NCBI GenBank assembly: GCA_964304625.1
Contig: OZ199838.1
Span: 11,805,608 to 11,869,607, forward strand
DNA length: 64,000 bases
Direction of reading: 5' to 3'
Origin: Kudoa neothunni
Lineage: Eukaryota; Animalia; Cnidaria
A program made the translations under genes and the position numbers. Every line of letters starts with the position of its first letter. Position 1 is the stretch's first letter. This document shows positions 20,387-64,000 of the stretch, piece by piece. A model generated the notes under the pieces. That model saw nothing but the letters and a program-made list of their open reading frames with translations. It was not told where the DNA came from and searched no databases.

Positions 20387-23283
20387 TTATTTCGTAATTT
20401 GAGCTACGGCGTAAATAGGAGCCTTCTTCTTTCTTTTGGACAGTCCGAAAAGCAAAAGGGCAATCAATCCAATAAGACACAATAATCCAAGCCTAAAATG
20501 ATTATTACGCGCTATTGAAAATTACTTTTTATAAATAGTTACATCGAAAACAAGATTGTTTTGTTCCTTAAATAATAATATTAGTCAAATATATGATCAA
20601 ACATTTTAAATACTTTGATTTAGAAGCACTCGCATTGTCTGATTGATCTTCTGGCACTATCGGGAAAAGATAATTATTGCCCGATAACTACAATCCAATT
20701 TACCCTCTTCTGGTACAGCAGCAACTGGATTAGCAACAGCTGTATTAGTAGCAACTGGTTTAGTGTCACCTGAGACAGTACCAACGGGTATAGAACCGAT
20801 TGGTACATCATCATCATCATCATCATTAGTTGGCATATGATTCACGGTTGCACCTCCAGCTGGAACAGTTTGTATAACTTTGTGTTGACCCGGATTTTGA
20901 CCATCGGCTATTTTACCCTAAAATTTATTAGATTGATTGCATTGTTACGTATTCGAGCAAGTAAATAATTAATTATTAAAAGTGAAATTTTACATTGAAA
21001 TCTTGGGCGTGAACGTTGGACACAGGTGGAGCATATTCTATTAATTATTTGATAAAAGTAAAAATTTATAACAACAATGGATTATTACTGTTGGATTTTG
21101 GATTTTGTACAACAAAAATATTTGAATCATGATTGGGATCCATAATGATGACGTTACCGTCGGCAAATATTTTTCTTTTGTGTGCTCTCACATTCGATAT
21201 ATCATATAAGTTGGTTTCATCCATTGTCAGTTGGATAGGTCTACGATTCGATTCCAATTCAAATGAAGGATCGGTATATTTCCTCATTCTATCAACTTCA
21301 TAGTCAACTTCGATATTGGGATCGTTATTAGTAGCAATATTGATGTTAATGTATTGATCAGAATTTGGCTTTTTGAGAAAGGTCTTGGCCACACCGAAAT
21401 GTCTCGGGCGTACAATGAATCGGGTAATTTTAGGGACAGCTTTGTTGTCAATAATAAAACCATCGTCGCATTTCACACTGCAATGTGTGGTGTAATCGCA
21501 TTGAGCAGCCAGCTTAAGACGTGTTCCTTCCTTGTTCGACGAATACAATGTGTAATCGCAGTAAGTGTCTGGTCTATTCTCTCTAGGAAGTTGAACCTTG
21601 ATTTGATCTCCGGTTAATTGGGTAAGCACAACCGGATAATCTTCCAAACGACTCTCTATAATGCATAAATAATTAAAATCTATCATTATTTAATTCGTAT
21701 ATACTGGTTTTCACTTGAAACACTTTCTCTGAGTAATGCGAAAATGGCACAACTTTTATCGAATAAAGATGATATTGCTTGAGACCAATTACCTCAAATG
21801 TTGAACTACATGTATTCACACATCTGTCACTGTGAAGACATCTTCCAGGATGATAAACACCCGTATTATCATTCTGAATAAAAACCATACAGTAGGTTTG
21901 GTGGGCTAAAGCATCCGTTGATGGGGTAATAACCACGGAGTTGAGTCCAGGGTGTGCAATTAACTTGAGTAGTTCAGCTTCAACCGTTTTAAATGACACA
22001 CTCGATTCGCAAGTCGAATTTCTAACTACAACTAATCTATATCGGGTATTTGGTTTTAGGTTTAACAGCCTTTTAGATGCACATTGAGTATCACATGATT
22101 GTTTCCCATCTTCGCCACATATGTGACTCATCTCATAACCGGGATATTCCTCATAATAAAGCTTCATTTGGCAGTGGTGACCTTCTTCAGCTAAAAGATC
22201 TAAGCGAACCAAAACTGAATTGTGGGTTATATCTTCCAATTCAACAATATTTTTCCCGACTAAATACAACAATAATCTAATAAATCGAACCTTAAAAACT
22301 ACTAATGAAGCAATTTTCGTAGTGAGAACTCATGTATTTGGTCTTTATTTTTAGAGTATAAGAAGGTGATGATCCTGTGGTGAGTGTCATAGTCACGTTG
22401 TTGCATGGGGTGAAGCATTTGGTTGGTTGAGTACTCGAACCACAATTTTGGATCCACGTACCACTAGAAGTTCCTTCACATACTTGAAACTCACACATTT
22501 CCTTTGGTTTAGCATTCGAGAATTCCACTTTTAATGCAGTGGTAGAGCTCCCTTTTTTCATACTTAAGGAAAATTGCTTAGCGCCTTGATCTTTGACCAA
22601 ATGAGTTTTTTTGGTATAGACATACAGAGGAGCCTGTTCTTCGCCACAGAAGAGTTTGACACGATCTTTTGTGGAAATAAATTCGGTTGAAATGGTTCCA
22701 AATCGGTGGCATTCAACATGATTTGACATGAATTTGATTGGGATATTGTTTTCCTTGATTTGACAAACGGTGTTGCCGGTGCATAGTTTAATGGTTTCGA
22801 ACACAATTTTATCCTCTTGAAAGGATGCTTTTGCGTAGAGGGGTTTTTCAAAAACTAATTAAAATCAGAAACATTTCAACTTTACAAAAATATCACTATT
22901 TTTGAGCGTCAGATAAATGTCGGAAGTAGAGGTACTACCACTGATTTTAACATAATAGGTGTCTTTGGGATCTGGGGGTATAAAGCTGTAGACTCCAACG
23001 CAACTGACCTGTGCTTCCTCTTGATTATCAGCAATGATAGGTTGATAGGAAAGAGTGTCGTTATGGAAGGTTAAAAGACTAATTGTGCATTTTTCTGTGG
23101 GATCTCCATTCAAGCTCAAATGAACGGTGTCTTTAGTAGTTGTAGGAGATCGCTCAATTTTGTATTTGGTTGCATAAACTATGGAATATATGAGTTAATT
23201 ATAACTGACAAAGATGATTCCACAATCTCACCTGATTTGTAAATCAGTTGAAAAGTCAACAGAGCGAAAAACACCAACCCCAT
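20387..23283 (-). CDS. Cys-bridged FN3-like repeat surface protein, type C (signal peptide, ~6 modules, Ala/Pro/Asp-rich stalk, TM, basic tail)
   Basis: Signal exon MGLVFFALLTFQLIYKS with a phase-1 intron. Modules carry C-x(12-16)-C-x(4-9)-C-x3-C and FN3-type LKPNTRY / LKQYHLY. Ends LGLLCLIGLIALLLFGLSKRKKKAPIYAVAQITK*. Confidence 0.75.
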
Positions 23284-25229
23284 TGTTATCGTGTAGTTGA
23301 CCAAAGGCAGACAAAAATTAACGAGTTAATACTATAATAATTAAATAGAATTGATATTTTCGGCAATTATTGATAATTTCCAGATAGTATCTATTCATAC
23401 TAATAATTTTTCCATAATGCTATAGTAGCGAACAAAAAAACTAACAACTACCTAAGTTCAAATATAACGAGAAGTATCAATAAAAAATAAAGACATGAGT
23501 CTATCTATTTAATATTGTTTACGTCCATAATTAATGAAATTAGTGGATTGTCATTCATATTGAATATTTGAATCGATATTATCGGGTATGAATGTATACA
23601 ACAAGAGATTCACTCTTAATCAATCTATTGAAATAAAACTCTTTTTGATACATTAATGTAATCTTCTTCCAGCCATCTCTACCTTCATTTAAAGTTCCCA
23701 AATAAAGTATATTAATAAAAACTTGGTATATTCTACCAAATGTAATGAACGTATGGGAGTTTTGATAAAATGAATTTCAGAAATTCTATATTTTTAATCG
23801 ATGTAAGTTATACAATTTTAACAAACACTACTTTTAAATTTTTCGAAAAATTTTATCCATTAACAAAAATAAGATCACATTAATATTTTGCCATTAGAAG
23901 TTGATAAATATGGTTGTCTCTAGTCCCCTGACAACTATAAATAAAATCTAATATATTATAAATTAATATCTTCAGCTCATATTATTCTAATTTATTATAA
24001 AGTAAATAAATATAATTTATTACAAAAACAACTACCAATTAAGTTAGTTATGTGTTTATCGACCTACAAAATTAATCCCTTGTGTGTAATTTTGATTATA
24101 ATTGATTATTTGAGTCCCCGAAGAGCTTGGTTATATACCAGAATTGATTACCTATACCAGATGTAAACAAATCAAATTTATAAGTAGATTATAAACACAC
24201 GTTGCAAATATTGAAAATTGAAAGTTGCGCGAGCGTACATTCATTTTAAGATTAAAGTTGTATGGATCAATAATTACAGTCTTAAGTTAATCCAAAAATC
24301 GGATTCACTCCATATTCAGTGTGGTTTAATAATCATTCGGCAATAGCAACGTTGCGGTTATTCTTACGAAAAAATTTAATCCTAAATGGACCAAAGCATG
24401 CGCGACCGCCATTTTTAATCCCACATTCTCTAATAAATATATGATATTCATAGTAAATTTTTAAAGCTGCAATTTTAACGTCCATAATAATGCATACATA
24501 TTTTATCATTACAATGGAAATTTACACTGTATTTTAAAATATGAAACGTGAAATTTTCAGCTAAATATCATAGCTATATTTCATTTTTATTATCTTATCT
24601 CTACTTTTCTCGCAGAAATAATTCAATGCGGAGGCTATTCGCATGCCAAATTTTTAACTTAAACAGCAAGTGCGCCCGAGCAATGACAATTTTTAATCCC
24701 AACGAGTCGTACTCACAAACTGTATAGAGATCTAATTTTCTAGAATCCGCTATATTTAATTATTCCTGATTTATCGCTTCAATCAATAGTCAGAATTAAT
24801 TAAATATAATCAAAACTAATGACACCTGAAAATTATCTATCGTTCCAATAGCCACTTTCTCTTTTAAACAATTTAAAACGATAAAGTACAGGCTCTATAA
24901 CTCTAATTTTAATTTTGGTAATAAAAATCTGGGGATGAAATAAATAAACAGAATCAGATTTATCCGAATGAATTATAAAGGTACTAAAACCTTCAATATT
25001 TCGAAGAAATATCCACCGTATACAGTCTAATTTAAAACGAAAATAAAATTCACTATTCCATTAATTTAATTTAGTTCTCATGTTCTCTGTGCTATTATAA
25101 ATTAAACGCGGTTTTTACTATTTTACGCAAGCGCTGAATTAATTACTCCTCCAACAATATTACATTAGCTGTGCAAAGAGCCACTTTCAAAATGCAAAAT
25201 ATTAAAAAATAGGCCTAATTATAATGAAT

Positions 25230-25303
25230 AGCCCCGGGCGGGGTTCGAACCCCCCAGCCATAGTGTAAAAGGCGGTGATGCCGTAGCGCTCTGCTGATCG
25301 CTC
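25230..25303 (-). pseudogene. tRNA-derived sequence (tRNA pseudogene or SINE head)
   Basis: GC-rich 74 nt in an AT-rich background, with a T-arm/B-box GGGGTTCGAACCCC and 3' CCGGGGCT. Acceptor and anticodon stems do not pair properly. Confidence 0.5.
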
Positions 25304-26161
25304 ATACATTAGCTTTGGTCACATACCTCACAGGACCGACCATTACATACTTGAATATTATGGCTCATGAAGATAACAAGTTCTTTATTTTAAATGGGGA
25401 TATCAAATTCTGTTTTAGCGAAGCTTACCGAAGCAATATTGATGTTATCCGAAATATATTTATTGAAGGTTAATTAATTTATTTATTTTTAATTCACTCC
25501 CAATTCTTCAAACGAAAATCATTTCAATATACCTATTATTTATCAACAGAATTATAGAATAAACGTAAGCAAATAACGCCGTATTTTTAACATAAAAATC
25601 AGCCTAGATGTGTATCCTCTATATTGGGCGCCTAATTATTTTCAACAGAAAATTTAACATATAAAGCGCCAAAACATATTTTATTTTTACACGTCACAAA
25701 AGCTCTATAAACTACGTTAACATTGAGAATCATACCAAAATTTGTCATGGCTAAAAACATTCCAACCCCACCCAATAATTATGCTAATCAAAAATAAATA
25801 AAAAAGAAAAACTGAAATTCATCATCTCCCAATAAAATCAAGACTTCGCCTGTATTATAATCACTATCGTAATTAATCAATTAATTTGTTGAGAAACTAA
25901 GTCCAGAAATATCTCCTCAAACGTTAATCTGAGGCAACAATCACAAATATCAAATGATTGGATACATTAAAAATGATTTTTATCAATAAATTTGTTCATT
26001 AACCAAACAATTTGACTGTAATCAAATTCAAACAACTATACGAATGATGACGGTTAGAGACGAATCATTGCAGATTAATCTCTAGGTTGAATCACACAGA
26101 AGCGCCACTAGCAACCTGTGAAATTCACTATTAACTCTGCGATCCTCCTGGAATAGTTGCG

Positions 26162-26970: not shown

Positions 26971-27048
26971 GTAAGATTAACCAACCATTATTCAAAAATG
27001 TACTATTGCAGTTTTTTTGGTGATGACGTTAATTTTTGATTTCATTAG

Positions 27049-32448: not shown

Positions 32449-33652
32449 ATGTTCAACCGTTTATTTGCAGCTTTTCTAAGAAATCATCGCGAGGATTATC
32501 CGGGCGAACGTAGTGGCCATAAGGCCACCAGAGCTGGGCCGTATATTATAATTTTTGGAGGATACAACAATATTGAGAACCATCGTGTATACACTGAGCT
32601 ATGGTTCTATCATATTTATTTCAAGAAATGGCATCGATTCTTGTTTCCTTCCAATTTCACCAAAGCAACTCTTTCTTCGTCGGTTCTGTTCCACAATGGA
32701 AATATCTACATATTTGGTGGTACTGGCTTTCCATTCGCTCAAGAATGTACCAACTACATCACAGTGTTTGATATTGAAAAACACTCGTGGCATATTACCG
32801 GTGATGAATCGATAAGCGCTCATCAACCAAGCAAAAAATATTGTCAGTCGATGGTGTTCTATCAAAACAAATTGTACGTGTTCGGTGGAACAACTGGATT
32901 TGTTGAAAATAATGACCTTAATATTTTTGATTTGACACTAAAGAAATGGATTCCAGTTGAACCAGCCCCCAGTGGGTTAGAACCTCTCAGATGTTTTCGA
33001 CATGAAGCAGTAGTTTTCAACCACAAGTAATTCGATACATCAAACAATTAAAAGATCTTATCAACCTTTAGAATGTATGTGATCGGTGGAGCGGTTGTTT
33101 CGAGCGACCGTTTGTACTCATTTGTAAATATCAGGTCGTTCGATTTGATAACACATGTGTGGGAAGAATCTCCCACCAACGGTGACAAACAGTTCAACTA
33201 CCCAATCAGTCGTACGTGTTTTGCTGTCGCTCAACAAAGTGAATTTCTTTTTGTGAGTGGAGGTAAAGGGGTTGATGGCAATGTTTTCGATGATATTTGG
33301 AAACTAAATCTGCTCACCATGACCTGGTCCAAGTTGCGTGTGGTAAACTTTCCACCAACCAGATTATTAATGTCTTTTGATTGTTGTTTAGAATTTGTTA
33401 TGCCCTGTGTATTTTCATTCAATGGTTTATGGATCTGATGATCGACTCTACATATTTGGAGGTATCAAAAATGACTACAATACACGTTCCAATGCACTCC
33501 AAGTGATAACCCACCAAGTTCAACGGTTGATGCATATTGCTGCGGATGTGGTGGGCTCAAACACACAATTTGAAGCGTTTGTGTCCAAACACACATTAAC
33601 TCATTTTAGACCATGCCAACCGTATGAGCTTTGTTTCCAAAAGGTTATCTAA
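32449..33652 (+). CDS. KLHDC10: Kelch domain-containing protein 10 (CRL2 substrate receptor), 3 exons
   Basis: PGERSGH..FGGYN..ELW, FGGTGFPF, LYVFGGTTG, RHE, PVYFHS and a C-terminal BC-box-like QRLMHIA. Introns at about 33027-33071 and 33344-33391. Confidence 0.85.
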
Positions 33653-38368: not shown

Positions 38369-40591
38369 ATGCTTCAGCAGATAATCACCATATTCGTATC
38401 ATTTTCTCTATCAGCTATAATGTGGATGATATCGTTGAGTTCAACATTGTTTTTGGCCTCATACTACAAATATTCCAACGGATACACACAACCGTTTTCT
38501 CTATTCTATCATTTGCTTAAGACTTTGCCTAGAGATTTATGGTAATTGATATGATTGATGAAATGTGAATTTGAGTTGGATGGTTGATTTGTCTTAGGTT
38601 TGTGTACATCATATTTTGCTGGAACTTGCAGTTGTTCTATCGAAAAATAAGAAATCTATCGATTATTGATGATCTTCGTTCGAACGTCAACAAAACACCA
38701 CATAAAGAAGCTCTTGTTGGTTTGAACGGTACCACCTACACTTTTCAACAGTTGGAGGATTATTCGAACCAGGTTTCAAATTTTATTCTCTCCAAAGGAC
38801 ACATTAATGAAAAATCTATTGTGCTTATTATGGAAAATTGCCCCGAGTACATTGCGTTATGGCTTGGAATTGCGAAGTGTGGTATTATCACCTCACTTCA
38901 AAATTACAATCTCACTGGAGAGCAGCTGATTAATTGTCTCAACTCATCCCAAGCCAACACAATTATCGTTTCCAACAAATACTATCAACATTCGTTGGCT
39001 GATCTGGATTTGAATGATTTCGTGGTGCATATTTATGATGTGCCTTCCACCGAAAATAAATCATCAACTCCAGCCGCCCTTTCTACTATCAATAACCAAA
39101 TATTGGAACAATCGACTCAACCTATTGTTTACACCGAAGGTGGTCCTGTAAAAAAACCTTCGTTTGATGGTACATACAATAAAATTTCGATCATTAGCCT
39201 CTAATATATTTTCTCCCAATTAAAAATCTAGATATTCTTTTCTACATCTATACATCGGGAACCACAGGCCTTCCAAAGCCAGTCAAAGTGTCCCATAGAA
39301 AGTAGATCTATGTTCAACTGCTTACGCTGAAATTTGACTATTTAGAGCATATGTATTCGCTTCGAGTGGGGCTTTTCTCAGCACGACCTCAAAGGATGTC
39401 ATTTACACCTTTCTTCCACTCTACCATATCAGCAGTGGTGTTGTGTGCGTGATGCAATGCTTCCTATTTGGCGCCACTATGGTTATTCGAGAAAAGTTTT
39501 CCGCTTCCAACCTTGTCAAAGACTGTATCAAATATCATGCTACTGTATGGTGGTTGTTTTTGTGAGTGCGAATTTGCTTTAACTATCATACAGGGATTCA
39601 ATTATGTTGGTGAGGTGTGTCGCTATCTGATGAATATACCGGTGCAGAAGGAGGAAAAAGATCTTAGACTGAGAATTGTTTTCGGTAATGGTCTTCGAGA
39701 GAATATTTGGAACGATTTTGCTGCTCGTTATCATATCGATCTTATTGGAGAATTCTATGGTAGCACCGAAGGCAATGTAGCTTTTATGAATGCAAGCAAT
39801 AAAACTGGTGCATGTGGTTTCCTACCAATATGGACCAAGCCATTTATTCCTTACTGTATTGTAAAATGTGATCTATCGACTGGCGAAATTATCAAAGATA
39901 AGAACGGTCATTGTATCCAATGCGATATTGGAGAGCCCGGACACATTATTGGACAAATCACAAAGTGTATGTGTGTTGATTTCTCTATCTCTCCATTATC
40001 TGAATGTATTTTTTTATTTTAGTAATCACCCTATCCAATGTGGACGGCTACACCTGCGAAAAAGCAACAAACGCCAAGCTTATTAGAAATGCATTTAGAG
40101 ATGGCGATGTTTATTTCATCACTGGAGACATTATGCGCCAAGATGAAGAGGGATATTTCTATTTTATGGATCGTGTGGGAGATACGTTCCGCTGGAAGGG
40201 AGAAAACGTGTCCACTCAGGAACTCGAGAATATCATTATCAAAAAATTGAACAATCAGGATGTTGTTGTGTATGGGGTGGAAGTACCGGGCAAAGAAGGC
40301 AAGGCTGGAATGCTCACCTTGGTTGATCAAAACCAGAATATCTCATTGTCTCGTGTGTATGATGCTGTACGCGATATGCCAGTATACCAACAACCATTGT
40401 TTGTACGAATTTCGTCTCAACATCACATCACTACCACTTTCAAATTCAACAAAGTCAACCTCAAAAAAGAAGGTTTCAATCCTCATTTGGTGACGGACAA
40501 ACTTTTCTACCTGGATCAACAAAATAAAACCTATCTACCACTAACCAAAGAAATCTATGATGATATTACTAATGGCGGGATCAATTTTTGA
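38369..40591 (+). CDS. Long-chain fatty acid transport protein / very-long-chain acyl-CoA synthetase (FATP/SLC27), 6 exons
   Basis: N-terminal TM and KTLPRDL; AMP-binding YIYTSGTTGLPK (~39243); FLPLYH; YVGEVCRYL; GNGLR; EFYGSTEGN; FATP signature YFYFMDRVGDTFRWKGENVST. Confidence 0.93.
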
Positions 40592-49073: not shown

Positions 49074-51397
49074 TTATTTGCTGCTTTTGATTGATAGCAC
49101 CGTTATCACTATTATGATAGCCAAGATAAACAGACTAGCTAGGACCCTATAACAACGTTATCTACCACCATGATTAATAACAGACTATTTACATCCACCA
49201 GTTGTCTTCGATCCATGTTCTAAATTGATAATTAAATATACGATATTATATTTAACGTAACACTTACGATTTTGCGGGAGCTAAAAATATAATATTAATA
49301 AACAATAGAATAAGAATGTTTAATGGTATTCCAAACATAAACAGAAAATTAATCGGCAACATGTCATTAAATTTATTGTTTGGAAAATTATAATGAGAGT
49401 AATTTAGAAAAGTTACAAGTGAGAAAAAATTTGGTTGGAAGACTGTAGAATTGAGCTTCAGCCACCACTGTATATGAAGTTGATTCACTCAACCCATAAA
49501 TAAACAAGTATGATCCACAGGAATACGAACAATCTTCTTTGCTCTCACAGCGCGCAACAATCAGATCAGCCTTGGTCCTGGGATCGGTTTTGTAAATTTT
49601 GAAATTGCACACCGTAGAAATTTCGGAATGTTGCAGATTGAATGCTAGACGTAGTTTTGTGCCATCGATCCACAGCGAGGAACTTTTTAAGGTTTCATAT
49701 TGAGACACTTAATTTTTTGTTATTTAGAATTTGAAATGAGTTTATGGATAAATATGTTAATAGATAATTACATGTAGTTGCAGCTATGTCGATGCTACTG
49801 GGTGCGTAATAATTCAATGGCTCTAGTACAATCGTGTATTTGGTTTTTGGAGTCAAAACTCCCATAAAAAATCCGTTAGAACAGAGATTAACACAAGGAA
49901 AACCAAATGAACATTGAATATTATCTAGAAACGCTTCAGTGCCTGTTTTCTTGACTTTAAGTTGACATAATGCATCCTTTATTTGAGAGTCAACTTTTAT
50001 ATTCAATTGTGCATATTGTTTGGATGGATGTATCGTATAGTCAAGTTTTGGTAGTCCCACTAAGGTTAGATGTCGATTAATTATAACGAAACTAATTAAT
50101 CACCTGTTTCGAATGATGTATATGAAAACTGGTTTTCGGTGTGTTCAACTTCAACTATGTACTTGGTTTTTGGTAGAAGATTTTCCAGTTTTAAGTCAAC
50201 ACAGGTGTTGGTGCATTTTTGCTTACCATCTTTTCCGCAAATTCTCTTTCGCCCGCTCTTCGGGTAGCCAAAATGATAGAGAGTTACTTCACATCGAGTA
50301 TTATCATCCACCTTCAACGATGACATATTCAATGTAACGGAACTTTGAGTTATTGCCGTAACCTCAATGATATTCTTATCAGCTTTATTCAGATTAATGA
50401 TTTAGAATTACTAATTTCAATTACAGTTTAGTTCTACTATGTAGGGATCCTTATCATGGCGTGTGTTTATTGATACTGTGAAAATACCATTTGCTGGACT
50501 TATTTTCATCTTGACGTGTGTACATGGTCTGAAACATTTGTTCGGAGTTGAAGTTGAATTAATAAAGCAATCTTCAACATAGTTAGAGGTAGATTTCCCT
50601 CCTTGTTTTATTTTAAATTGACATATATCGTCAGGTTTAGGATCGTGAAAATGAATAACTAGACTATCTGTTACACCGGAAGTTTTATTTAGAGAAATGG
50701 CAAATTTTCTAGGTCCTTCTGGAATCATCAACTCCGTGTTGGCGTAGTCGAAGAATACGTTCGCCTCAGACGTTCCACAGAATAACTCTAGGGGAAAATT
50801 CGACGGTCGTCTATACGTAGCCGATAGCTCGTAGTATCTCCCACAGTTAACATTAGCAGGAATACTATCCAAAACTATATGTTTATGTCTGATTTGGCAT
50901 GTTGTTGAAAACTGGCAATTTTTCTTCACTTTAAAGTAGACATTGTCTTCTATCAATTTGGGAACCACATTTGGTGGCTTGGGAAAGTCTATTTTATAAT
51001 ATTAAACTCTTATAGAAACAGAATTATATTACTGTTTTCTACATAAATATAATGTGTTGACTTTTTTGATTTAATTGACATGTAGTATGATGTTTGAGCT
51101 TTGTTAGTTTTAACCGATACTTCATCACGACAATCCACCGTACAAAATGGTAAAATTCCACATCGTACGTCTTCATATTGAGCTACGTTATCGGTTACAC
51201 TAAGTAACTTTATCGTGCATGATGTTTTTGCCGTCCCTCTCAATCTCAAGTAAATTGTGTCACTCCCAGCAATTCGTTCTACCATATACTGATGCAGACA
51301 AACTAAGAATAAGGTAGCTAAACTACGATTTAATTCAGTTATATGTACCTTGTTTGACACAAAACAATGACCATATCAACCACAACCATAGCTCCAT
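49074..51397 (-). CDS. Cys-bridged FN3-like repeat surface protein, type A copy 1 (intact)
   Basis: Signal exon MELWLWLIWSLFCVKQ; six modules (e.g. CEVTLY..ICGKDGKQKCTNTC..LLPKTKY); 13-nt micro-exon 49268-49280; TM end TWIEDNWWILFILAIIIVITVLSIKSSK*. Confidence 0.78.
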
Positions 51398-54250
51398 CGT
51401 ATTTTTTATTTAATATAAAGGGATAAAAATTCAAAGGTCTAGGATTAGATTAATACAGACTAAAGATCCTATAGATTGTAAATTTCCGGATCAATATTTA
51501 CGAAGAAGTATTATATCCATTTATTGTCGAATGATTATTTCATCGAATTCATGAAACGGTATATAATACAATTGATTGTCGGTTAGTTGGACATGAGATC
51601 TAATTTTTGGATAGCATGCAAATAATGTTTATTTTTATGTTAACTAACATTTATGTATTTAATCGAATATAACTGAAATATCATTGAACAGAATCAAAGC
51701 TTTTTTTACTTTTTTTTCTGCGAATAAAGATATATAGGGATATTTTAATATTGATTGAATATACACCGTAAATAAATATTTTTTACATTTTAAATAATAT
51801 TGAATGATAATCAATATAAATATAACGATAAACGTGACCTGCATTTTTTATATAATTATAAGTTATTAGGCAAATAAAAATTTATTTTATATAGGCTTAG
51901 ATAAAACGTGATAAATAAATCTGAATAAAATTTAATAATAAATAATAATTATCATTTCATTGAAAGTAAAATAATTATTTCGTTCAGTAGAAAGAGGAAA
52001 GCCGCTTAGTCACCAGCTCTAGTTGCTACAAAAGCCACTCCTCCAATAACCACAGCCAAAGCACCCAACACTGCGAGGATGCTAAATAAAAGAATTATGA
52101 AATTTTTAACCATATTTCACATCAAAATTACATCCACCAGTTCTTCTTCATCCAACCACTATATATAAAAAATAAATAGTTAAAATTCGTAATTTATATA
52201 ATAATTATTATTACCCAGTCCCTTGTTCTATACAAAATTATATAACAATATATAGATAACCTAATAATTTACTTCCAACTTCAATCTCTTCAATAAGTGC
52301 TGCAGATTGTCCATCGTCAGATAACAACTGATAACTGTAATTTATATCTATATCCTCAAATACAACGGAGCTTGCACAATCAATATCTTGATCAGTTGGT
52401 TTTCCTATCTTCTCAAATAAGAATTTATCCTCGGGATCTTTGGGATTGACGGCGTAGATAACCACATTACATAAATTCCCTGACTGAGTTTTGTCTGGTA
52501 TGATGGTTAATCTCCTTTCGTAACCATCAAAAATGATGTCTGGTTTTACTTTATCATTATTTTTTCCTAAAAATAACGTTATAACGTTTTCAAATCAAGA
52601 TTTAATCACTTAGCAGTCGCGACACTTGATAAACTGTGTAATCAATGTGACCAGCATGAACCAACTCGATATTTATGGTTACATTCACTGGCAAATCCAC
52701 CACTTCGAATCTGTGAGAACATAAACCCCAACATGGTTTTCCATCAGAACAGGTGGCTATTGTTTTTTTAAATCTTCTGGATCTCTTGTATCTCACGTAA
52801 CATGTCATTTTTGGAAGATACGACTCATATTCACTCCCTGCTCCTGGGATCATGAGCATTGTATCACCGAAAAAGAATGTTTGTGTCTCGCTGAATTGTA
52901 TTGTTTCTAATCATACTAAGTATTTATAATATAATATATGTATACTTGTGGCGAAAAACGAATTAACAGCATATTCAGCACTATTTTTTTCTGCTCCAAT
53001 TTTCATCTCAAGAATGTATGCTGTGTTGGGAGTCAAAAGCTTTAGCGGTGTCTTATTGTCACATGCTTCAGGGCAAGCTTCATTTCTCTCTTCCCCACAT
53101 ATCGCAGTCATTGGTAGACCGGGAAGTTTCGCGTGTACCAATGATGGAAAACACTTAGGTGAATTCTCAAGGTTTGATACTTGAAAACTAGCTGAGGTTG
53201 CTGTGATATCAGATATAGCAACAGTATTTTTTGTATCTATAAAATTCTGTAATTTATTATTTCGTTAAGGTTATACCTTTAACTTTATATTCTGCATATC
53301 CACGTCTAGTTCCAATTTTGACTGTATAATGATCTGCAGCAGCATTTTGATTAGCCAAGTTTAAAGTAGTAGCTCCACCACAGTACTTGAAACATTTATC
53401 ACTTTCGCCATTTCCAGCCTGACTACATTTTTCCGCGTATGTGCTAACACTATTACTCTTTATTTGGAAATTGCAGATCTCATTGTTCAAATATGGATTA
53501 TGCATTTGTAATGAGAAATCTGTGTGTGGAGAGGTGGATTGAGAAGAAGTAAAAGGAACATATTGGTATTTGTTATCTTTATTGTAGAAAGACTTGTTAG
53601 CGTAAAACATGACTTTAGCTTGATTAGCCCCACAGTAAGAATAATAGGCATTGGACATTGAGTATCGAATTGGTATAGTAATGTTATGTAGATTACAGCT
53701 GTTATTTTCTACTTTAGCCAAAGTTCTATCATGTTTTGTACTTTTAACTCGGCATTTATAGTTGTCAGTGCAGAAATTGTTAACTCCGAATTGCGCTTCT
53801 TCTTCACTCAATGTTACATTAGTTTCAGGAAGTCTGGGCATATCTATTGAAAAATGAGCTGAAAATTATAAGTATTATTGCTGTTTACCTGCCGGAATCG
53901 CTAATATATTTATTTTTCTTCCTTCAACAATTCTGAAATAGTGCATCAACCGTCCACTATTGACATTAATCACAACTATCTGATTACATTTCGTTTCGCA
54001 CACAGGTAGAATATTTGCTTCAGTGGTTGCTCCAGATATTTTGCATATTGTCTCATTAAATTTTGCTCTAACTCCATTTCTAAATAAATGGTCTATTTTA
54101 CAATCTTCGTTTTCGTCTCCTTTCAGATAAATTGTAATTTCGTCCATGTATGTTGAGATTTCTTGATCAACTATAGGTATATCGTCTGGATTTATTGTAG
54201 TTTCGGGAGGAGGGGTAGTGGTAATAGTTTCGGTAGCATCAATCGAGATG
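50610..54250. repeat. First copy of the tandemly duplicated A-B segment (second copy ~57908-63925, interrupted by the hAT)
   Basis: Direct sequence match at offset +7305 (A part) and +9664 (B part). ORFs 52238-52465 and 61902-62129 are identical, as are 52602-52859 and 62266-62523. Confidence 0.95.
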
Positions 54251-54673
54251 TCATTATCAGTTGGCGCGGAATCTTCATTTTCAGAATCATCGTCAGCTCC
54301 AGAATCATCTCCATTTTCAGAATCAACTTCAGTTTGAGAATTATCACCAGTTCTAGTACTATCTTCAATAACAGGATTAACATCACCAGAGTCACTTTCA
54401 GCATCAGGACTATCGGATTTCATAAATATCGGATGAATATTCGACATTAAAAGCCGGCTACTTTGAGCAGCAGTAACATCGGTATTGGGAGCTTCTTCTG
54501 CTGCTGGTTTTTCCACTACTGATGGAGGTGGTGGTGGTGGGCGTTTAATTTGTTGAACGAAATATTTGTGACAACGTGCTAAATATGAATAACAGAATTA
54601 AAAAATGACAGAAAAGCAATATATTACTAGTTGTGAGAGCTGTTAAAAATAAAAACAATATTGACAGCCTCAT
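52006..54673 (-). CDS. Cys-bridged FN3-like repeat surface protein, type B copy 1 (acidic/Pro/Thr-rich N-terminal region)
   Basis: Signal exon MRLSILFLFLTALTT; D/E/S-rich region; modules with LLTPNTAY; 13-nt micro-exon 52215-52227; TM end GWMKKNWWIILAVLGALAVVIGGVAFVATRAGD*. Confidence 0.78.
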
Positions 54674-54817
54674 TTTATTAATTCTTCGTTATTAATCATT
54701 CATCGGAGTTATTGAAGTCACTAAAATTACGTCGCCAATAAACGATAATAGTCTATAAGAATTAGTTAATTAATACTCAGTATATGCTTCCGAAGATGCT
54801 TTCTTACTTTTTTTAAT

Positions 54818-57800
54818 GGCAGTGTCTATTTTGCCGGACGCGCTTTTTCTCTTAAAATAATAATTCAATCGCTACAATTTTTTCCAAAAAATATCTTTTA
54901 TAAATGCAGAATATAAATTTAGTTTCATTTATCTTTTAATTAATAATTAGGTATCAAAATACATCGAGGATATTTTAAACTCATTCATAAGTATCATTAT
55001 AAATGACATTAAATTTTTTATAAATCTGTATTATTTACATAATTAATTTAATTTTATGTGTAACAGAATCATAAACGAGTAAAATACCCTCTAGCGTGCG
55101 GTTGTAACTTTGATAGTCGCGAGTAGAATCACTATGGAAGGAGAGTCTGATCAAACACTACTAATTCAGGATATTACATCAGGCCCTAAGGTCGGAAATG
55201 CATTTACAAACTTTGAAAAGGCTAAAAAAATCATGGATAAGTACTCAAAGCGGAACAACCTTTGTTACTGGGTCCGAGACTCTAGAAAAATCTCAACTGC
55301 CCTAAAAAAATTTGATAGAGACATGAACTCTGATCTTGTTTATTATGAAGCCACTTTTTGTTGTGTTCATGGTGGTAAAAATGTAATTATCTATATAAAA
55401 ATTGATGTAATTAATTTGAATTCAGATACAATCTAAAAGTTCTGGAAAGAGAAAAATCAACAGCCATAAAAGTGGTTGCAATTTCTTCATTACACTGCGA
55501 GTTCCTAAAAACATGAATATGTTAGTTATTAGAAAATTGGATCATACTCACAGCTGCAACAGAAATGAGCATTTTAGGAATTTTTTACCAATGAATAGAA
55601 AATTAGATGAAGAAAGCAAGAATCTTATAAAAAATGTTCATTTTTATGATGGAAATTTAAAAAGAGTACAAGTAGAAATCATGAACCAATCACAAAAAAA
55701 GGTTTCGTTGAAGCAAATCCATAATTATATTCAAACACTAAAAAAATGTTTCGTTGGATATTTCGGAATTGTTTAATTCAATAAAAAAATTCTTACCCAA
55801 ATGCAACTATCGAAATATTGCACAATAACTCCAATGAAATGACTGGAATATTTTTCCAAGACCTTTATATGAAAAATGTTATTAAAAAATTCCCCGAATT
55901 AGTATTTATGGATGCTACTTATAAATTAATCAATAATCGTATCCCATTGTATATAAGTCTGTTTATCGATTCTTTTGAGCAAAGCCAAATAGGAGCTATT
56001 GCTCTTTTATCTGAGGAGAGTACCGTGACTGTTACCTGGTTATGTCAATCTCTACTTAAACATAACGAGGAAATGTCAACCAAAACAGTTTGTTTCATTA
56101 CGGATAAAGACATAATTGAAAGAAACTCTATGAGATCTGTATTTCCTAACGTAAGTACAAACTTATGCCTGTACCGTGTCTTAAGAACATTTGGTAGAGA
56201 AATCTCTACTTTAAGAATGAGAATAAACAAAGCTGAAAGAAAAGCTGCCTTAGAGTTGATTCAAAAGCTTTGTTATACCGATGATCCAAAAATTTATGAA
56301 AATTACCATGAATTGTTAAATAAGACATGTAACAAAAAATCATTAGTTATTATAATAAATCTTGGGATCCAATCAAATATGAATGGTGCCCGGCATACAT
56401 GAACCTAAAGGGTACTTTTTAAATGAAACCAATAATCGATTAGAATGCATAAATTCCAAAGTTAAACAAATCTTAAAAAAATTATCAACAATTGAAGTCT
56501 TTTTCAGCGATCTACTTATTTATTTATCAAGTATGAGGACTGAGCGTGAGAGTAAAGCAGTTAAAGAGTTTACAACCCAAAATGTTGAGAAATTAAATTC
56601 GGACATTAACGGACGATATAAAACATTGTTACCTTCATATGCGTATAATATTATGCAGAATGAAATAAATAATTATATCGAACCCTATACCAATCCTGAT
56701 CCCAATAGTTGTACATGTTATTTCTACGTAAGTATGGAGTTGCCATGTAGGCATATTATTTACGCTAGAAAAATAATGAACATGAATTTATATGACGAGA
56801 AAATTTGTAATAAGAGGTGGCACAAAGAATATTACCTGTCATTTATTCAAATGACCAAAAATTTATATCTTCAAAATCCTTCGTGTTGTGTGCAACCAAG
56901 TATTACAGAAATTTAGAGTCAGTGACCTGTTCCGAATTCTGCTTTTAAGCGATACAGGGAGCTAGAAATTCTTTGTAAGAAAATAGCTTCGCTAGGGTCT
57001 GAAAAAACAGGGAGTCAATATGATTCATTAAAAAAGATTTTAGGTGAATTAATCTCTCTTATTTCCAATGGGGATTCTCTGGATAAGGTGACTATTTTTT
57101 CCACTATTCATATATCAACTTAATTTAGTTCAAGTTAATGTCTGAATCTGTCATCATAAACAATCAAGAGATTTCAATCCCAACATGTAATTAATGATAT
57201 TGTCTTTAGTAGAATTTTTATTTCGTGTTTAGTTACTGAGGAATCACGATTAGAGAATGAGGATATACTAGAAGCAGTTAATGATAATGCTCCATCATCA
57301 ATAATTGATATGGAGATCCCGAATATTGTAGATGATACCACAACTAAAAATCCATCTTTGAAGGGTGTGTATCTTTTGTCCATTTTGCTAAATTCATAAA
57401 ATTATAGGAATTAAGCTGCCAACAGTAGTGAAATTGAGAGGTAGACCAAAAGGTGTATTTCAAACAGTTATTGGTTTAAGAAAAAAAAGAAAATTATAAT
57501 TATGATAATAATAAACACCAGTATCGATATATAGTATTCAAATATAGTTTTACGTGGATGTTAAACAGTCCCAATTATTTGGCGTTGCATTACAAGATAA
57601 TTTCAAACATTTATTATTTAAAAGCAGTATACTCAACATTTTATTAAATTTTAGTAGTGTATCAATCATCTGTTAAAAACATTTACCTAATTATAAAAAT
57701 TTTAAATACGAATTGGCCAAATAGTTTTACTTTACTGTATTTTCATTTGGATATTATGGATACAAATTAGCTATGTTAAAATTCGTCACTGAATTAATGA

Positions 57801-57907
57801 AACTAAATTTATATTCTGCATTTATAAAAGATATTTTTTGGAAAAAATTGTAGCGATTGAATTATTATTTTAAGAGAAAAAGCGCGTCCGGCAAAATAGA
57901 CACTGCC
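54818..57907 (+). mobile_element. Mutator-like element (MULE), full length
   Basis: 112-bp TIRs GGCAGTGTCTATTTTGCCGGACGCGC... (54818-54929 and 57796-57907); 9-bp TSD TTTTTTAAT (54809-54817, 57908-57916). Confidence 0.95.
55134..57499 (+). pseudogene. MULE transposase (ZSWIM3-like; DDE, SWIM finger, AT-hook), intron-containing and frameshifted
   Basis: FMDATYK, FITDKD, ETNNRLE; SWIM CTC..LPCRH; C-terminal KLRGRPKG. Frame breaks near 55750-55820 and 56340. The CxxH motif reads CLYR. Confidence 0.8.
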
Positions 57908-58702
57908 TTTTTTAATTTTAAATTGGCATATATCATCAAGGTTAGGATCGTGAAAATGAATAACTAGACTATTAGGTTTATCGGAAGTTTTATGAAGGGA
58001 AATGGCAAATTTCCTAGGTCCTTCTGGAATCATCAACTCCGTGTTGGCGTAGTCGAAGAATACGTTTGCCTCAGACGTTCCACAATATAACTCTAGGAGA
58101 AAATTTGACGGTCGTCGATATGTAGCCGATAACTCGTAGTATCTCCCACAGTTAACATTAGCAGGAATACTATCCAAAACTATATGTTTATGTCTGATTT
58201 GGCATGTTGTTGAAAACTGACAGTTTTTCTTCACTTTAAAGTAGACATTGTCTTCTATCAATTTGGGAACCACATTTGGTGGCTTGGGAAAGTCTATTTT
58301 ATAATATTAAACTCTTATAGAAACAGAATTATATTACTGTTTTCTACATAAATATAATGTGTTGACTTTTTTGATTTAATTAACATGTAGTATGATGTTT
58401 GAGCTTTGTTAGTTTTAACCAATACTTAATCACGACAATCCACCGTACAAAATGGTAAAATTCCACATCGTACGTCTTCATATTGAGCTACGTTATCGGT
58501 TACACTAAGCAACTTTATTGTGCATGACGTTTTTGCCGTCCCTCTCAATCTCAAGTAAATTGTGTCACTCCCAGCAATTCGTTCTACCATATACTGATGC
58601 AGACAAACTAAGAATAAGGTAGCTAAACTACGATTTAATTCAGTTATATGTACCTTGTTTGACACAAAACAATGACCATATCAACCACAACCATAGCTCC
58701 AT
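57908..58702 (-). pseudogene. Type A surface-protein gene copy 2, 5' fragment
   Basis: Matches A1 at offset +7305; GAA>TAA nonsense at 58426-58428; cut by the MULE in module 3. Confidence 0.85.
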
Positions 58703-58783
58703 CGTATTTTTTTTATTTAATATAAAGGGATAAAAATTCAAAAGCCTAGGATTAGATTAATACAGACTAAAGATCCTATAGAT

Positions 58784-61073
58784 CAGTGGCTCTTAACCTG
58801 GGTTCGATGAAAAAATTCCTAATATTAGATCACATTTAGGATTAATATTCTTTATAATTTTAATATTTTAAATAAACCTTCTATTGGTTGTCTTTATAAT
58901 CCTGATTAGGAGCTCAATTAAAAAGATAATAATGATCACTTAAAAAATTATGGATAATTTAGCTAAAATTATTATTTGAGCATTTGAAATTCTTTTCGAT
59001 TTATCTGATTAGTACAATCACGTGTAACTGGTTACAGAGTTTACTTCGCGTCAGTGTTATTTACTTGCTAATTTTGTGAGGGTTACTGGAAATAAACATT
59101 GGCACTTTGAATGTTTAACCAAAAAAGAAAGTGATCAATTGATTTTGTACAGTTCGGTTTTACCTATGTAACGGAACTTAATTGTATTCAACGACCTCTT
59201 TGCATGATATGCAACTCGAAGTTAAGTAATTCTAGTTTGGTACCGGCGAAACTAAAAGAGCATTTTACAATTGTCCATGGAGACTCTGCATATAGGAATA
59301 TGACTCTTTCCGAACTTGGAGCAAAGAGAGTAAGATATGACGTAAGATCTACTTTGCAAAATTTTTGATTTGTTAATATCGATAAGCCTATCTTAACAGT
59401 AACATATGAAGTTTCATATCGCATTGGAAAACAAGGTGAACCTCACAATATTAGTGAAACGCTCGTTAAAGCTGTCGCGTTGAAGATGGCAAATATTTTA
59501 TTGGGAAGTATTGCAGAAAAAAAATTAGCACAAATTCCTTTGTCAAATGATACCGTTAAGAAAAGAATTGATGATATGATTAAAGATATTTTGGATCAAT
59601 TATTTTCTGATCTAATTTCATGTAAAGCAAAGTTTAGTATACAATTTGAAGAAACTGCTGATATATCAAACCTAAGTCAACTGGTTTCGTTTGTTAGATA
59701 TTTGAAAAATGGTGTTATTGTTGAATATTTTCTTTTTTGCAAACCTTTAACAACAACTGCCAAGGCAGTGGATGTTAAGAAAGTTGTCGATGAGTTTTTC
59801 AAAGACAATGGGCTTTCATGGAATATGGTTTCTTCTTTTTGCACTGATAGTGCCCAAGCTATGCTGGAGCGTAACTCTGGTTTTTGTGCTCTTGTGAAAG
59901 CAGATGCACCTCATATTATTGTTATGCATTGCATTTTACATTGATATGCATTAGCAACAAAGAATATGTCTCCAAGGTTGGCAGAAGTGTTGAAAATCGT
60001 GATAGATTGTGTAAATTTTGTGAGACGTAATGCTTTGAACCATCGAATTTTTAAATATTGCTGCAAAGAAATGGATTCTGAGTTTGAATTACTTTTGTTT
60101 TATTAAAATGTGAGGTGGCTGTCTCGAGGGAAGTATTAAACCGCGTTTTCACTCTGCGAAAGGAAATGGGTATATTTTTGCTGGAATGTAACCATTGCCA
60201 TGCACAATGTTTCAATAATTTGGAATTTAATCTTCTTTTGGTATACATGGCTGATATTTTTGATTCCATAAACTGTTTGAACCTGCAGATGAAAGTAAAT
60301 GGAGTCAAAATCATTGAGGCAGAGATGCATCTTAGTGCATTCCAAATAAAATAATCTTTATACAAACGAAGAATAATGGTCGACAATTATGCAAACTTTC
60401 CACGTTTAGACGATATTTGTAATATTAATGGCGACGGTAACAACGAATTGATCATTTTACCTTTTGCATTAAGGGAAATAATTACTGCAAATTTAAAAGA
60501 ACTTTCTAACTCACTCGATGGCTATTTCCCTTCTAAAAATTCATTCCCCGGCTGGGTGAGGCAGCCATTTAGCTGAGGATGCCAATAATAAATATCTTGA
60601 TGAGCTAATCGAACTTCAACACAACACAATTCAAAAACAACTTTTCGAAAAAGTTTCACCATCAATCTTTTGGATAAATCAAATTGAGAAATATCCTGCA
60701 ATTTCGATGAAAGCATGGAAGTTTTTATTCCTTTCGTAATAACTTATCTTTGCGAACAATCATTTTCAAGATTGGTCACCATGAAAACTAAATTAAGAAA
60801 TAAGCTTTTCTGTGAAAACGATATGCGAATTGCTCTCTCCAGCATTTTGCCTCGTATTGTGGATTTGGTTGCAAAAAAACAAGAACAAAAATCGCACTAA
60901 TTGGATTTATATTAATTTTATTTATACGTTTTGCAATTTTTATGATGTGCAAAATAATGATTAAATTGTAATTCATTTTATTTAAAATTTAAAAAATTTT
61001 ATGTTTGAGGTTCGACGAGGCGTGCTATAGGGTAATAGTGGTTCGGCGACTCTCAAAATGTTGAGAACCACTG
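58784..61073 (+). mobile_element. hAT transposon, Buster/Charlie (ZBED5/SCAND3/FAM200-like) type, with decayed transposase
   Basis: TIRs CAGTGGCTCTTAAC / GTTGAGAACCACTG; 8-bp TSD CTATAGAT (58776-58783, 61074-61081). Transposase motifs IPLSNDTVKKRI, FCTDSAQAM, HCILH, TYLCEQSFS and KQEQKSH, with stops and frameshifts. Confidence 0.95.
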
Positions 61074-61669
61074 CTATAGATTGTAAATTTCCGGATCAAT
61101 ATTTACGAAGGAGTATTATATCCATTTATTGTCGAATGATTATCTCATCGAATTCATAAAACGGTATATAATACAATTGACGAACGATTAGTTCGGCATG
61201 AGATCTAATTTTTGGATAGCATGCAAACGGTGTTTATTTTTTTGTTAACTAACATTTTATATATTTAATTAAATATAACTAAAATATCATTGGATCGAAT
61301 AAAAGCTTTTTTAATATTTTTTATATAATTAAGAATATATAAGGATTCTCATAATATTGATTGCATATATATCGAAAATAAATTCGAAATTTTTATGAAT
61401 AACCATGTTAAAAATTTTTGGAAAACAAGTAAATAAATATTTTTTACATTTCGAATAATGATTAATTAATAAAAACATAAATATAACGATAAACGTGATC
61501 AGCATGATTTTTTATATAATCATAATTCATCTGGCAAATAAAAATTTATTTTATATAGGCTTAGATAAAACGTGATAAATAAATCTGAATAAAATTTAAT
61601 AATAAATAATAATTATCATTTCATTGAAAGTAAAATAATTATTTCGTTCAGTAGAAAGAGGAAAGCCGC

Positions 61670-64000
61670 TTAGTCACCAGCTCTAGTTGCTACAAAAGCC
61701 ACTCCTCCAATAACCACAGCCAAAGCACCCAACACTGCGAGGATGCTAAATAAAAGAATTATGAAATTTTTAACCATATTTCACATCAAAATTACATCCA
61801 CCAGTTCTTCTTCATCCAACCACTATATATAAAAAATAAATAGTTAAAATTCGTAATTTATATAATAATTATTATTACCCAGTCCCTTGTTCTATACAAA
61901 ATTATATAACAATATATAGATAACCTAATAACTTACTTCCAACTTCAATCTCTTCAATAAGTGCTGCAGATTGTCCATCGTCAGATAACAACTGATAACT
62001 GTAATTTATATCTATATCCTCAAATACAACGGAGCTTGCACAATCAATATCTTGATCAGTTGGTTTTCCTATCTTCTCAAATAAGAATTTATCCTCGGGA
62101 TCTTTGGGATTGACGGCGTAGATAACCACATTACATAAATTCCCTGACTGAGTTTTGTCTGGTATGATGGTTAATCTCCTTTCGTAACCATCAAAAATGA
62201 TGTCTGGTTTTACTTTATCATTATTTTTTCCTAAAAATAACGTTATAACGTTTTCAAATCAAGATTTAATCACTTAGCAGTCGCGACACTTGATAAACTG
62301 TGTAATCAATGTGACCAGCATGAACCAACTCGATATTTATGGTTACATTCACTGGCAAATCCACCACTTCGAATCTGTGAGAACATAAACCCCAACATGG
62401 TTTTCCATCAGAACAGGTGGCTATTGTTTTTTTAAATCTTCTGGATCTCTTGTATCTCACGTAACATGTCATTTTTGGAAGATACGACTCATATTCACTC
62501 CCTGCTCCTGGGATCATGAGCATTGTATCACCGAAAAAGAATGTTTGTGTCTCGCTGAATTGTATTGTTTCTAATCATACTAAGTATTTATAATATAATA
62601 TATGTATACTTGTGGCGAAAAACGAATTAACAGCATATTCAGCACTATTTTTTTCTGCTCCAATTTTCATCTCAAGAATGTATGCTGTGTTGGGAGTCAA
62701 AAGCTTTAGCGGTGTCTTATTGTCACATGCTTCAGGGCAAGCTTCATTTCTCTCTTCCCCACATATCGCAGTCATTGGTAAACCAGGTAGATTCGCGTGT
62801 ACCAATGATGGAAAACACTTTGGTGTATTCTCAAGGTTTGATACTTGAAAACTAGCTGAGGTTGTTGTGATGTCAGATAACGTAACAGTATTTTTTGTAT
62901 CTATAAAATATCGTAATTTATAATTTAGTTAAGCTTATACCTTTAATTTTATATTCTGCATATCCATGTCTAGTTCCAATTTTGACGGTATAATCAGCAT
63001 TAAGAGCACTATCTTGCCCATCCACGACCAATGTGGTGGCTCCACCACAGTACTTGAAACATTTGTCATTGACAGTACTTCCAGTCTGACTACATTTATC
63101 CTTAAAATCATTGCCAGTATCTTTAATTTTGAAATTGCATATCTCATTGTTCAAATATGGATTATGCATTTGTAATGAGAAATCTGTGTGTGGAGAGGTG
63201 GATTGAGAAGAAGTAAAAGGAACATATTGGTATTTGTTATCTTTATTGTAGAAAGACTTGTTAGCGTAAAACATGACTTTAGCTTGATTAGCCCCACAGT
63301 AAGAATAATAGGCATTGGACATTGAGTATCGAATTGGTATAGTAATGTTATGTAGATTACAGCTGTTATTTTCTACTTTAGCCAAAGTTCTATCATGTTT
63401 TGTACTTTTAACTCGGCATTTATAGTTGTCAGTGCAGAAATTGTTAACTCCGAATTGCGCCTCTTCTTCACTTAATGTTACATTAGTTTCCGGAAGTCTT
63501 GGCATATCTATTAAAGAATAAGCTTAAAATTATAGGTAATACTATTATTTACCTGCTGGAATCGCTAATATATTAATTTTTCTTCCTTCGACAATTCTGA
63601 AATAGTGCATCAATCGCCCACTATTGACATTAATCACAACTATCTGATTACATTTCGTTTCGCACACAGGTAGAATGTTTGCTTCAGTGGTTGCTCCAGA
63701 TATTTTGCATATTGTCTCATTAAATTTTGCTCTAACTCCATTTCTAAATAAATGGTCTATTTTACAATCTTCATTTTCGTCTCCTTTCAGATAAATTGTA
63801 ACTTCGTCCATGTATGTTGAGATTTCTTGATCAACTATAGGTATATCGTCTGGATTTATTGTAGTTTCGGGAGGAGGGGTAGTGGTAATAGTTTCGGTAG
63901 CATCAATCGAGATGTCACTATCAGTTGAAATGTCACTATCAGTTGAATTGTCACCCTCAGTTTCAGAATCATCTTTAATTTCTGGATTATCTTCAACCTC
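61670..64000 (-). CDS. Cys-bridged FN3-like repeat surface protein, type B copy 2 (5' end beyond the window)
   Basis: Matches B1 at offset +9664 with the same exon structure; no disruption seen within the window. Confidence 0.8.

Follow-up and report, generated by a model that had tools for sequence, protein, structure and literature searches.

The question raised by a 64,000-nt stretch of the genome of the cnidarian parasite Kudoa neothunni (contig OZ199838.1, positions 11,805,608-11,869,607; hereafter the window, in whose own positions coordinates are given unless another sequence is named) is what is encoded by five related loci on its minus strand, here called C, A1, B1, A2 and B2. A sequence-only reading of this DNA had taken them for a clustered family of type-I surface proteins built from an unusual four-cysteine module resembling fibronectin type III (FN3) domains, and had suspected a parasite without being told the organism, which the origin of the contig confirms. 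The window has a GC content of about 31%, and an Rfam scan of its whole length gave no match. The analysis reported here suggests that the loci probably represent an undescribed, very large multigene family of predicted type-I surface proteins with disulfide-stapled FN3 modules, which would serve in contact with the host or between parasite cells.

Three of the loci (C, A1 and B1) are complete, A2 is a fragment and B2 is cut by the window end, and the open reading frames (ORFs) support all five at the positions originally proposed. The complete genes share a common plan, in which a hydrophobic signal-like exon is followed by the modules (M1, M3 and so on), a membrane helix and a tail of 5 to 17 residues. 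Gene C (20387-23283, minus strand like all family features below; ATG at 23283, stop at 20387) was modeled ab initio at about 843 residues from ORFs, splice sites, a hidden Markov model (HMM) of the module, and hydropathy. Its hydrophobic signal exon of 17 residues (23232-23283) precedes an M1 exon (~22897-23178), an exon 3 in which a non-FN3 half is joined to M3 (~22303-22854), a fused M4+M5 exon (~21705-22259), an M6 exon (~21073-21679) followed by acidic and Thr/Pro-rich stalk exons, and a last exon (20387-20511) whose hydrophobic helix is followed by KRKKK plus 12 residues. Gene A1 (49074-51397; ATG at 51397, stop at 49074), delineated by ORFs, the module HMM, an ab initio model and hydropathy, comprises a signal exon (51349-51397), M1 (51013-51317), exon 3 (50420-50988), M4 with the motif LLPKTKY (50099-50382), M5 with LTPKTKY (49698-50091), M6 (49391-49707), micro-exons for which the junctions 3' of M6 are uncertain, and a membrane-helix exon with a six-residue tail (49074-49146). 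Gene B1 (52006-54673; ATG at 54673, stop at 52006), supported by the same kinds of evidence, comprises a signal exon (54610-54673), an acidic low-complexity region with M1 (53878-54578), exon 3 (53260-53858), M4 with LTPNTAY (52914-53236), M5 (52605-52886), a two-cysteine M6-like exon (52241-52566), and a membrane-helix exon with a five-residue tail that ends at 52006. The truncated copy A2 (57812-58680) retains part of M1 (58429-58680) and about the first 135 residues of exon 3 (57812-58306), its homology to A1 stopping at about that point of the exon-3 ORF. Gene B2 (61900-64000), the 5' end of which lies beyond the window, retains an M6-like exon (61902-62129), M5 (62269-62574), M4 (62578-62928), exon 3 (62921-63523) and M1 (63548-64000).

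Because the signal exons measure 52 nt in C, 49 nt in A1 and 64 nt in B1, all three genes have a phase-1 first intron, and the later introns are mostly in phase 1 as well according to a dynamic-programming splice model. The introns are of the GT-AG type; of two that were read directly in gene C, the first is 53 nt long and the other 31 to 42 nt depending on the donor, and the lengths in the ab initio models are 25 to 121 nt overall. The median intron of K. neothunni is 49 bp (PMC12239612). The terminal helices of C, A1 and B1 have Kyte-Doolittle 19-residue means of 2.5 to 3.1, while the ectodomain exons do not exceed 1.3 on the same scale, except for one value of 1.96 that arises from read-through intron sequence. 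Between four and eight N-x-S/T sites are present per gene model. The signal exon, phase-1 first intron, membrane helix and tiny tail described for the family at the outset are thus all present in the three complete genes.

Within the window, the cysteine motif was found to be confined to these loci. Among the 3,923 residues of the locus ORFs there are 18 occurrences of the pattern C-x(8-22)-C-x(3-14)-C-x3-C, against none in the 20,167 residues of all other window ORFs of at least 50 residues. The spacings in the window modules are 12 to 19 residues between the first and second cysteines (C1 and C2) and 4 to 12 between the second and third (C2 and C3), so that the motif itself stands as initially described but its proposed spacings, 12-16 and 4-11, were too narrow. 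The four motifs quoted in the sequence-only reading (LKPNTRY, LLPKTKY, LTPKTKY and LTPNTAY) all occur in the locus ORFs. An HMM iterated over the ORFs of 60 paralogous loci unites M1, M3, M4, M5 and M6 of A1, B1 and C, with E-values of 3e-17 to 6e-4. In exon 3, which is 183 residues long, the A, B and C types are only 17% to 29% identical, and all eight cysteines are invariant in an alignment of 24 paralogues, in agreement with the early observation that the three types have diverged strongly while keeping their cysteines.

Exon 3 turned out to be composed of two unlike halves. Residues 91 to 177 align with the module profile (hhalign probability 96.7%, E 3e-10) with the four cysteines in register and constitute M3, while the first half, previously counted as module 2, has the pattern C-x5-C-x17-C-x21-C and no match to the module profile. 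The confidence of its structural model is only moderate, none of the 24 paralogues has a Pfam match in this half, and a feature search of the ESM Atlas gave no usable match. The first half is thus a different domain, and each gene has five FN3-like modules and one other beta-rich domain; of the roughly six like modules in constant order that had been proposed, five and their order stand and the second does not.

The first half of exon 3 (for example 50700-50968) does resemble the central C...CG..P part of cubilin-like CUB repeats of sea stars (Patiria and Acanthaster) over 58 columns, at exon-3 alignment positions 26 to 84, with an hhalign probability of 92% and a summed E of 7e-34 over 15 stretches. 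The window also contains a canonical CUB exon (10836-11261, plus strand; Pfam E 3.4e-15) in a multi-exon plus-strand gene that lies upstream of the family, and this exon was used as a negative control. Identification as a CUB domain (PF00431) was rejected: no Pfam CUB match at E of 1 or less was obtained in 24 paralogues, and hhalign against the genuine CUB domain of the window gave a probability of 0.1%. The sea-star match is therefore regarded as a partial resemblance and is left without explanation.

To what fold the cysteine-bearing modules belong was addressed by structure prediction and by structure comparison with Foldseek and VIA-align, a kind of check that the sequence-only reading had itself proposed. 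Module 4 of gene C (21970-22257), folded by AlphaFold with 59 paralogous modules, gave a model of seven to eight strands with a predicted local distance difference test score (pLDDT) of 90.1 and a predicted template modeling score (pTM) of 0.81. In a VIA-align comparison with 48,161 PDB representatives, all of the top 50 matches were FN3 domains, the best being fibronectin EDB (Z 10.8, root-mean-square deviation 1.8 A over 79 residues). Foldseek against the PDB gave template modeling (TM) scores of 0.6 to 0.69 to FN3 domains of tenascin, fibronectin and Dscam, and TM scores to fn3 clusters of the ESM Atlas were 0.70 to 0.76. M3, within the exon-3 model, matched FN3 with Z 7.5 and a root-mean-square deviation of 2.4 to 3.0 A. 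Single exons or modules served as input in all searches and folding runs.

The sequence comparisons pointed to the same fold at a much greater distance. The module profile matched fibronectin (best E 7e-5), titin, Dscam, tenascin and neogenin among PDB sequences through the E-F segment, and 13 of 60 modules were weak matches to PF00041 (best E 0.0016), none of the 60 reaching its gathering threshold. A Pfam search with ten window exons gave nothing significant, no Pfam family reaching the cut-off. The L-x-P-x-T-x-Y tyrosine-corner motif of the E-F segment is complete in 32 of 162 modules and its tyrosine is present in 93 of them, while the strand-B tryptophan is not conserved, no alignment column having a tryptophan in more than four of the 162. 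Taken together, the fold matches and the sub-threshold Pfam scores indicate that the modules are very divergent members of the FN3 superfamily outside the curated families. The FN3-like fold proposed from the letters alone is accordingly supported, and so is the statement that no named family could be assigned, since no Pfam model reaches its cut-off and no described family matches over the full length. In common with FN3 (PF00041), the modules have the seven-strand beta-sandwich and a predicted extracellular tandem arrangement, with phase-1 introns at most of their borders according to the ab initio models; unlike canonical FN3 domains, they have an invariant pair of cysteines, C1-C4, and usually the pair C2-C3 as well.

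The pairing of these cysteines is suggested by the way they are lost. When 162 distinct modules were aligned to the module HMM, 127 had all four cysteines, 34 had only C1 and C4 and one had none in these columns, while C2 without C3 or C3 without C2 was found in none of the 162. The spacing between C3 and C4 is always 3 residues in this set, with 14 to 19 between C1 and C2 and 5 to 8 between C2 and C3. Since C2 and C3 are present or absent together, C1-C4 and C2-C3 disulfides are implied, of which the former would be obligatory and the latter optional. In the secondary structure of the module 4 model, C1 opens strand C, C2 comes after strand C', and C3 and C4 lie ahead of strand E, so that the C1-C4 bond would tie the two sheets together and the C2-C3 bond would close the C'-E loop.

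How large the family is was estimated by running the module profile over the 40-Mb genome, and the first look gave no fewer than 1,064 candidates, which are arranged in tandem arrays. The best 150 of the 1,064 candidates, which were scored, all have E-values of 4e-12 or less, 148 of them are without a stop codon, and they lie on all three chromosomes; the arrays are dispersed along the chromosomes rather than only at their ends. The 183-residue exon 3 was found in at least 129 genomic places, the M4+M5 exon of gene C has 76 genomic matches at E of 1e-5 or less, and the B subfamily has 16 to 17 members at the DNA level. By extrapolation, about five modules per gene would give roughly 200 genes, a share of a few percent when set against the 5,316 gene predictions in the K. 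neothunni assembly, which comprises 40.2 Mb (N50 12.0 Mb, 30.41% GC) in three chromosomes and a circular mitochondrion, with repeats making up 45.6% (PMC12239612). The words fibronectin, surface, expanded and orphan do not occur in the text of the genome paper, and its annotation used protein hints, which favors conserved genes and could miss an orphan family (PMC12239612).

Beyond this genome the family appears to be restricted to the same lineage. The exon-3 profile gave 20 matches among 1.84 billion representative proteins, of which about 16 are unnamed exon-sized fragments and the others are CUB proteins, one bacterial protein and one that is zinc-finger-like by name. Word-indexed protein searches with the module alignment and with the fused M4+M5 exon of gene C gave no match, but the length window of these searches deprives that outcome of weight. 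Six matches were traced and found to originate from two sequencing runs and one metagenome. One contig of a relative (L061) carries an A-type gene and another, from a different run (L070), a B-type gene, both with the module order of the window and at 24% to 44% identity; a fragment from a metagenome (L063) has 64% identity to B. The SNF5 exon of the organism of the A-type contig is only 44% identical to that of K. neothunni, a distance that applies to this contig only; the relative is thus distant, and the A type originated before that split. In a further contig of a relative (L069, 67-1068, plus strand; Logan SRR33849685), M1 and exon 3 lie in one ORF of 333 residues with no intron between them, either because the intron was lost or because an in-frame intron is present. 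The literature that we searched contained no paper linking myxozoans with an FN3 family. Judged from these sequence comparisons, a very large and lineage-restricted family that is undescribed in the literature searched is supported, and the module count and the mostly unnamed matches bear out the view of a lineage-specific, expanding family, for which a genome-wide HMM count and a search of relatives had been suggested.

One alternative to a host-facing role is that the proteins serve adhesion or recognition between parasite cells, in the manner of Dscam. Myxozoan development proceeds cell within cell and the spores are built from several cell types. Such a role finds support in the module fold, which is like that of FN3 domains in adhesion molecules (sDscam, NCAM2, contactin and Robo), in the conservation of the A, B and C types, whose architecture stays the same from species to species, and in purifying selection on the framework. 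A common fold does not reveal function, however, and more than 1,000 modules with copy-specific patches would far exceed the known adhesion needs of an organism with few cell types. We therefore regard a purely parasite-to-parasite role as unlikely, although it is the alternative that survives best.

The copy-specific differences are best seen in the window itself, where A1-B1 and A2-B2 form tandem units 9,664 bp apart. Between the units lie transposase ORFs of MULE/ZSWIM type (55110-56916, plus strand; Pfam MULE 1e-15, ZSWIM1-3 RNaseH-like 1.3e-24, ZSWIM3_N 1.7e-12 and SWIM 3.5e-4), and within the second unit A2 and B2 have between them a remnant weakly assigned as a hAT-like transposase (59480-60900, plus strand; DUF4371 E 0.0014, below the cut-off); transposon activity may lie behind the form of the array or the break in A2. 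Between B1 and B2, identity is 100% over 51901 to about 53100 (1.2 kb, introns included) and again over 53458-53757. The sequence between these stretches is a variable block of 360 bp, at 53101-53460 in B1 and about 62765-63124 in B2, which was delimited by sliding identity and by nonsynonymous (dN) and synonymous (dS) divergence, and which spans the part of module 3 from C1 to the F strand, the next intron and about the first 50 codons of M4. Its identity between B1 and B2 is 55% to 90% per 60-nt window, with dN 0.23, dS 0.52 and dN/dS 0.44 (NG86, for the one pair B1/B2), in comparison to a dS of 0 to 0.06 in the flanks. The 26 amino-acid changes that separate B1 from B2 lie in the part of module 3 from C1 to the F strand, with strands A, B, F and G nearly unchanged, and dN/dS of 0 to 0.05 in the conserved parts indicates purifying selection on the framework. 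A1 and A2 start to diverge in the same module.

Four B copies lie in one array, the further two having the block at C1:11881362-11881738 and C1:11887141-11887518 (assembly coordinates); the flanks of the four copies are identical, and the block is 82% to 94% identical among the four and at most 75% identical to anything elsewhere in the genome. A recent import of the block from a distant paralogue was rejected on the ground of this last value. Identical flanks around a divergent block with dN/dS of 0.44 thus indicate mosaic homogenization and do not demonstrate positive selection, and the simplest reading of the sequences is that gene conversion keeps neighbors identical except in the variable block.

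A block of this kind raises the possibility of true antigenic variation, in which 200 or more genes would be held, one or a few would be expressed per cell with switching, and variants would be generated by segmental gene conversion at module 3. A large intact repertoire, which is a feature of variant surface antigens, is found here in tandem arrays (at least 1,064 candidates, with all of the best 150 significant and 148 of these stop-free), near-identical copies differ in one sharply bounded block, the predicted surface proteins have tiny tails, and antigenic variation has been proposed for another myxozoan from other gene families (10.64898/2026.02.11.705288). On the other side, dN/dS in the block is below rather than above 1, the block has no donor elsewhere in the genome at more than 75% identity outside the local array, the arrays are not confined to chromosome ends, and the A and B architecture is kept in distant species. 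We consider a switching repertoire improbable, somewhat more so than a role restricted to parasite adhesion; if true, it would be the first such protozoan-style system described in a metazoan parasite and the first on an FN3 fold, with conversion sparing or targeting the C-C'-E face. It is very improbable that most copies are non-functional, that is, unexpressed decaying duplicates or repeat-borne ORFs, for although nearly half of the genome consists of repeats, MULE and hAT-like elements lie within the array and A2 is truncated, the best module matches are nearly all stop-free, the cysteines are invariant at 17% to 29% identity, C, A1 and B1 have kept the signal peptide, splice sites and membrane helix, the dN/dS values lie far below 1, and the architecture is conserved in distant species.

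Beyond the FN3 superfamily, comparison with known systems did not place the family in any of them. The class I cytokine-receptor homology module likewise has an FN3-fold ectodomain with four cysteines and two disulfides, and these receptors were a weak Foldseek match of the two-domain exon-3 model (E about 1e-3, TM 0.3). Membership was rejected since WSxWS is absent from all 162 modules and from the three gene models; in addition, the Kudoa tails of 5 to 17 residues have no box motifs, and the cytokine-receptor cysteine pattern differs from the Kudoa positions at strand C, in the C'-E segment and before strand E. The Toxoplasma SRS (SAG1-related) and Plasmodium 6-Cys s48/45 proteins are large or tandemly arrayed families of surface proteins with repeated disulfide-bonded beta-sandwich modules, and the likeness is one of functional analogy only. 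No SRS or 6-Cys match was obtained in any sequence or fold search, the top matches all being FN3, and those families are anchored by glycosylphosphatidylinositol or have another fold, whereas a membrane helix is present in the Kudoa proteins, which come from a cnidarian animal. Membership in the Giardia-type VSPs was rejected as well, the cysteine content being 2.9% to 3.8% with 0 to 1 CXXC per protein and the three tails being unlike each other. In the myxozoan Sphaerospora molnari, VSP-like and RIFIN/STEVOR-like families of 18 to 27 genes were proposed to serve immune evasion (preprint 10.64898/2026.02.11.705288). Both cases concern expanded lineage-specific membrane proteins of a myxozoan with MULE elements abundant nearby, but the S. 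molnari families are either CXXC-rich (more than 10% cysteine) or RIFIN-like, while the Kudoa family has C-x3-C in an FN3 fold, the low cysteine content given above and hundreds of genes; the preprint mentions neither fibronectin nor FN3 (10.64898/2026.02.11.705288).

Taken together, we favor a family of contact proteins at the parasite surface. The product of each gene would be a type-I membrane glycoprotein. Behind a signal peptide that is cleaved off it would have five divergent modules of FN3 fold, with an unrelated, beta-rich domain placed ahead of module 3, and a stalk of low complexity would lead to a single membrane helix and a tail too small for signaling. In each module a C1-C4 disulfide would staple the beginning of strand C to the residues right in front of strand E, and in most modules the C'-E loop would be closed by a second disulfide, C2-C3. 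The family would have grown by tandem duplication, with gene conversion homogenizing neighbors except for the C-C'-E segment of module 3 that the disulfides frame. We infer that the outer membrane is the most likely site of these proteins, where they would form a rigid array resistant to proteases, which may mediate contact with host tissue or between parasite cells, module 3 providing a variable binding or exposed face. Among a coat, parasite adhesion and a switching repertoire, a host-facing coat or adhesin is the role that we prefer.

Several points weigh against this interpretation and against the details of the model. The gene models are ab initio with uncertain 3' juxtamembrane splice junctions, and the signal peptide and the membrane helix were assigned by hydropathy alone. 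The input alignment for the module 4 model consisted of paralogous modules only, the disulfide geometry was deduced from the order of secondary-structure elements rather than from Cys-Cys distances, and the Fisher test for the joint loss of C2 and C3 (p = 3e-34) is uncorrected for relatedness among the modules. Diversifying selection (dN/dS above 1), as might be looked for in a variable face, was not found in the variable block in the single pair compared. Kudoa plasmodia grow inside muscle fibers, where a coat exposed to antibodies is less obviously needed. The conservation of the A and B types across distant species, as judged from their sequences, would be no less in keeping with fixed functions than with a coat free to vary, and very few RNA reads map to K. 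neothunni (PMC12239612).

Gene C is separated from the A/B array by ordinary genes. These include a Kelch-repeat protein (32449-33652, plus strand; Pfam E 1.9e-26) and a gene at 38584-40591 (plus strand) which reads to us like an acyl-CoA synthetase or fatty-acid transporter, although its ORF 40004-40588 has no Pfam match at E of 0.01 or less. Elsewhere in the assembly, the mitochondrial COX1 (C4:2716-3945, minus strand, within the contig part C4:1216-5445) is very divergent and contains 8 in-frame TGA codons, which means that TGA stands for an amino acid in this mitochondrial code. A comparison of HSP70 gave identities of about 78% at best, to many different animals, and so pointed to no particular one. 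The sole (TAAACC)n array of the assembly, at C2:12,039,536-12,040,069, agrees with the (TAAACC)n telomere reported at one chromosome end (PMC12239612).

Fisheries and aquaculture suffer major losses from myxozoans, and in tuna Kudoa is the cause of 'jelly meat' after harvest; to our knowledge almost nothing has been established about myxozoan surface molecules. The modules described here would be natural FN3 domains stabilized by a defined disulfide pair and may be of interest for the engineering of FN3 scaffolds. For the parasite itself, members of the family are candidate antigens that could be used in diagnosis or vaccines, and the family provides a concrete gene set with which the suspected antigen variation of myxozoans could be tested.

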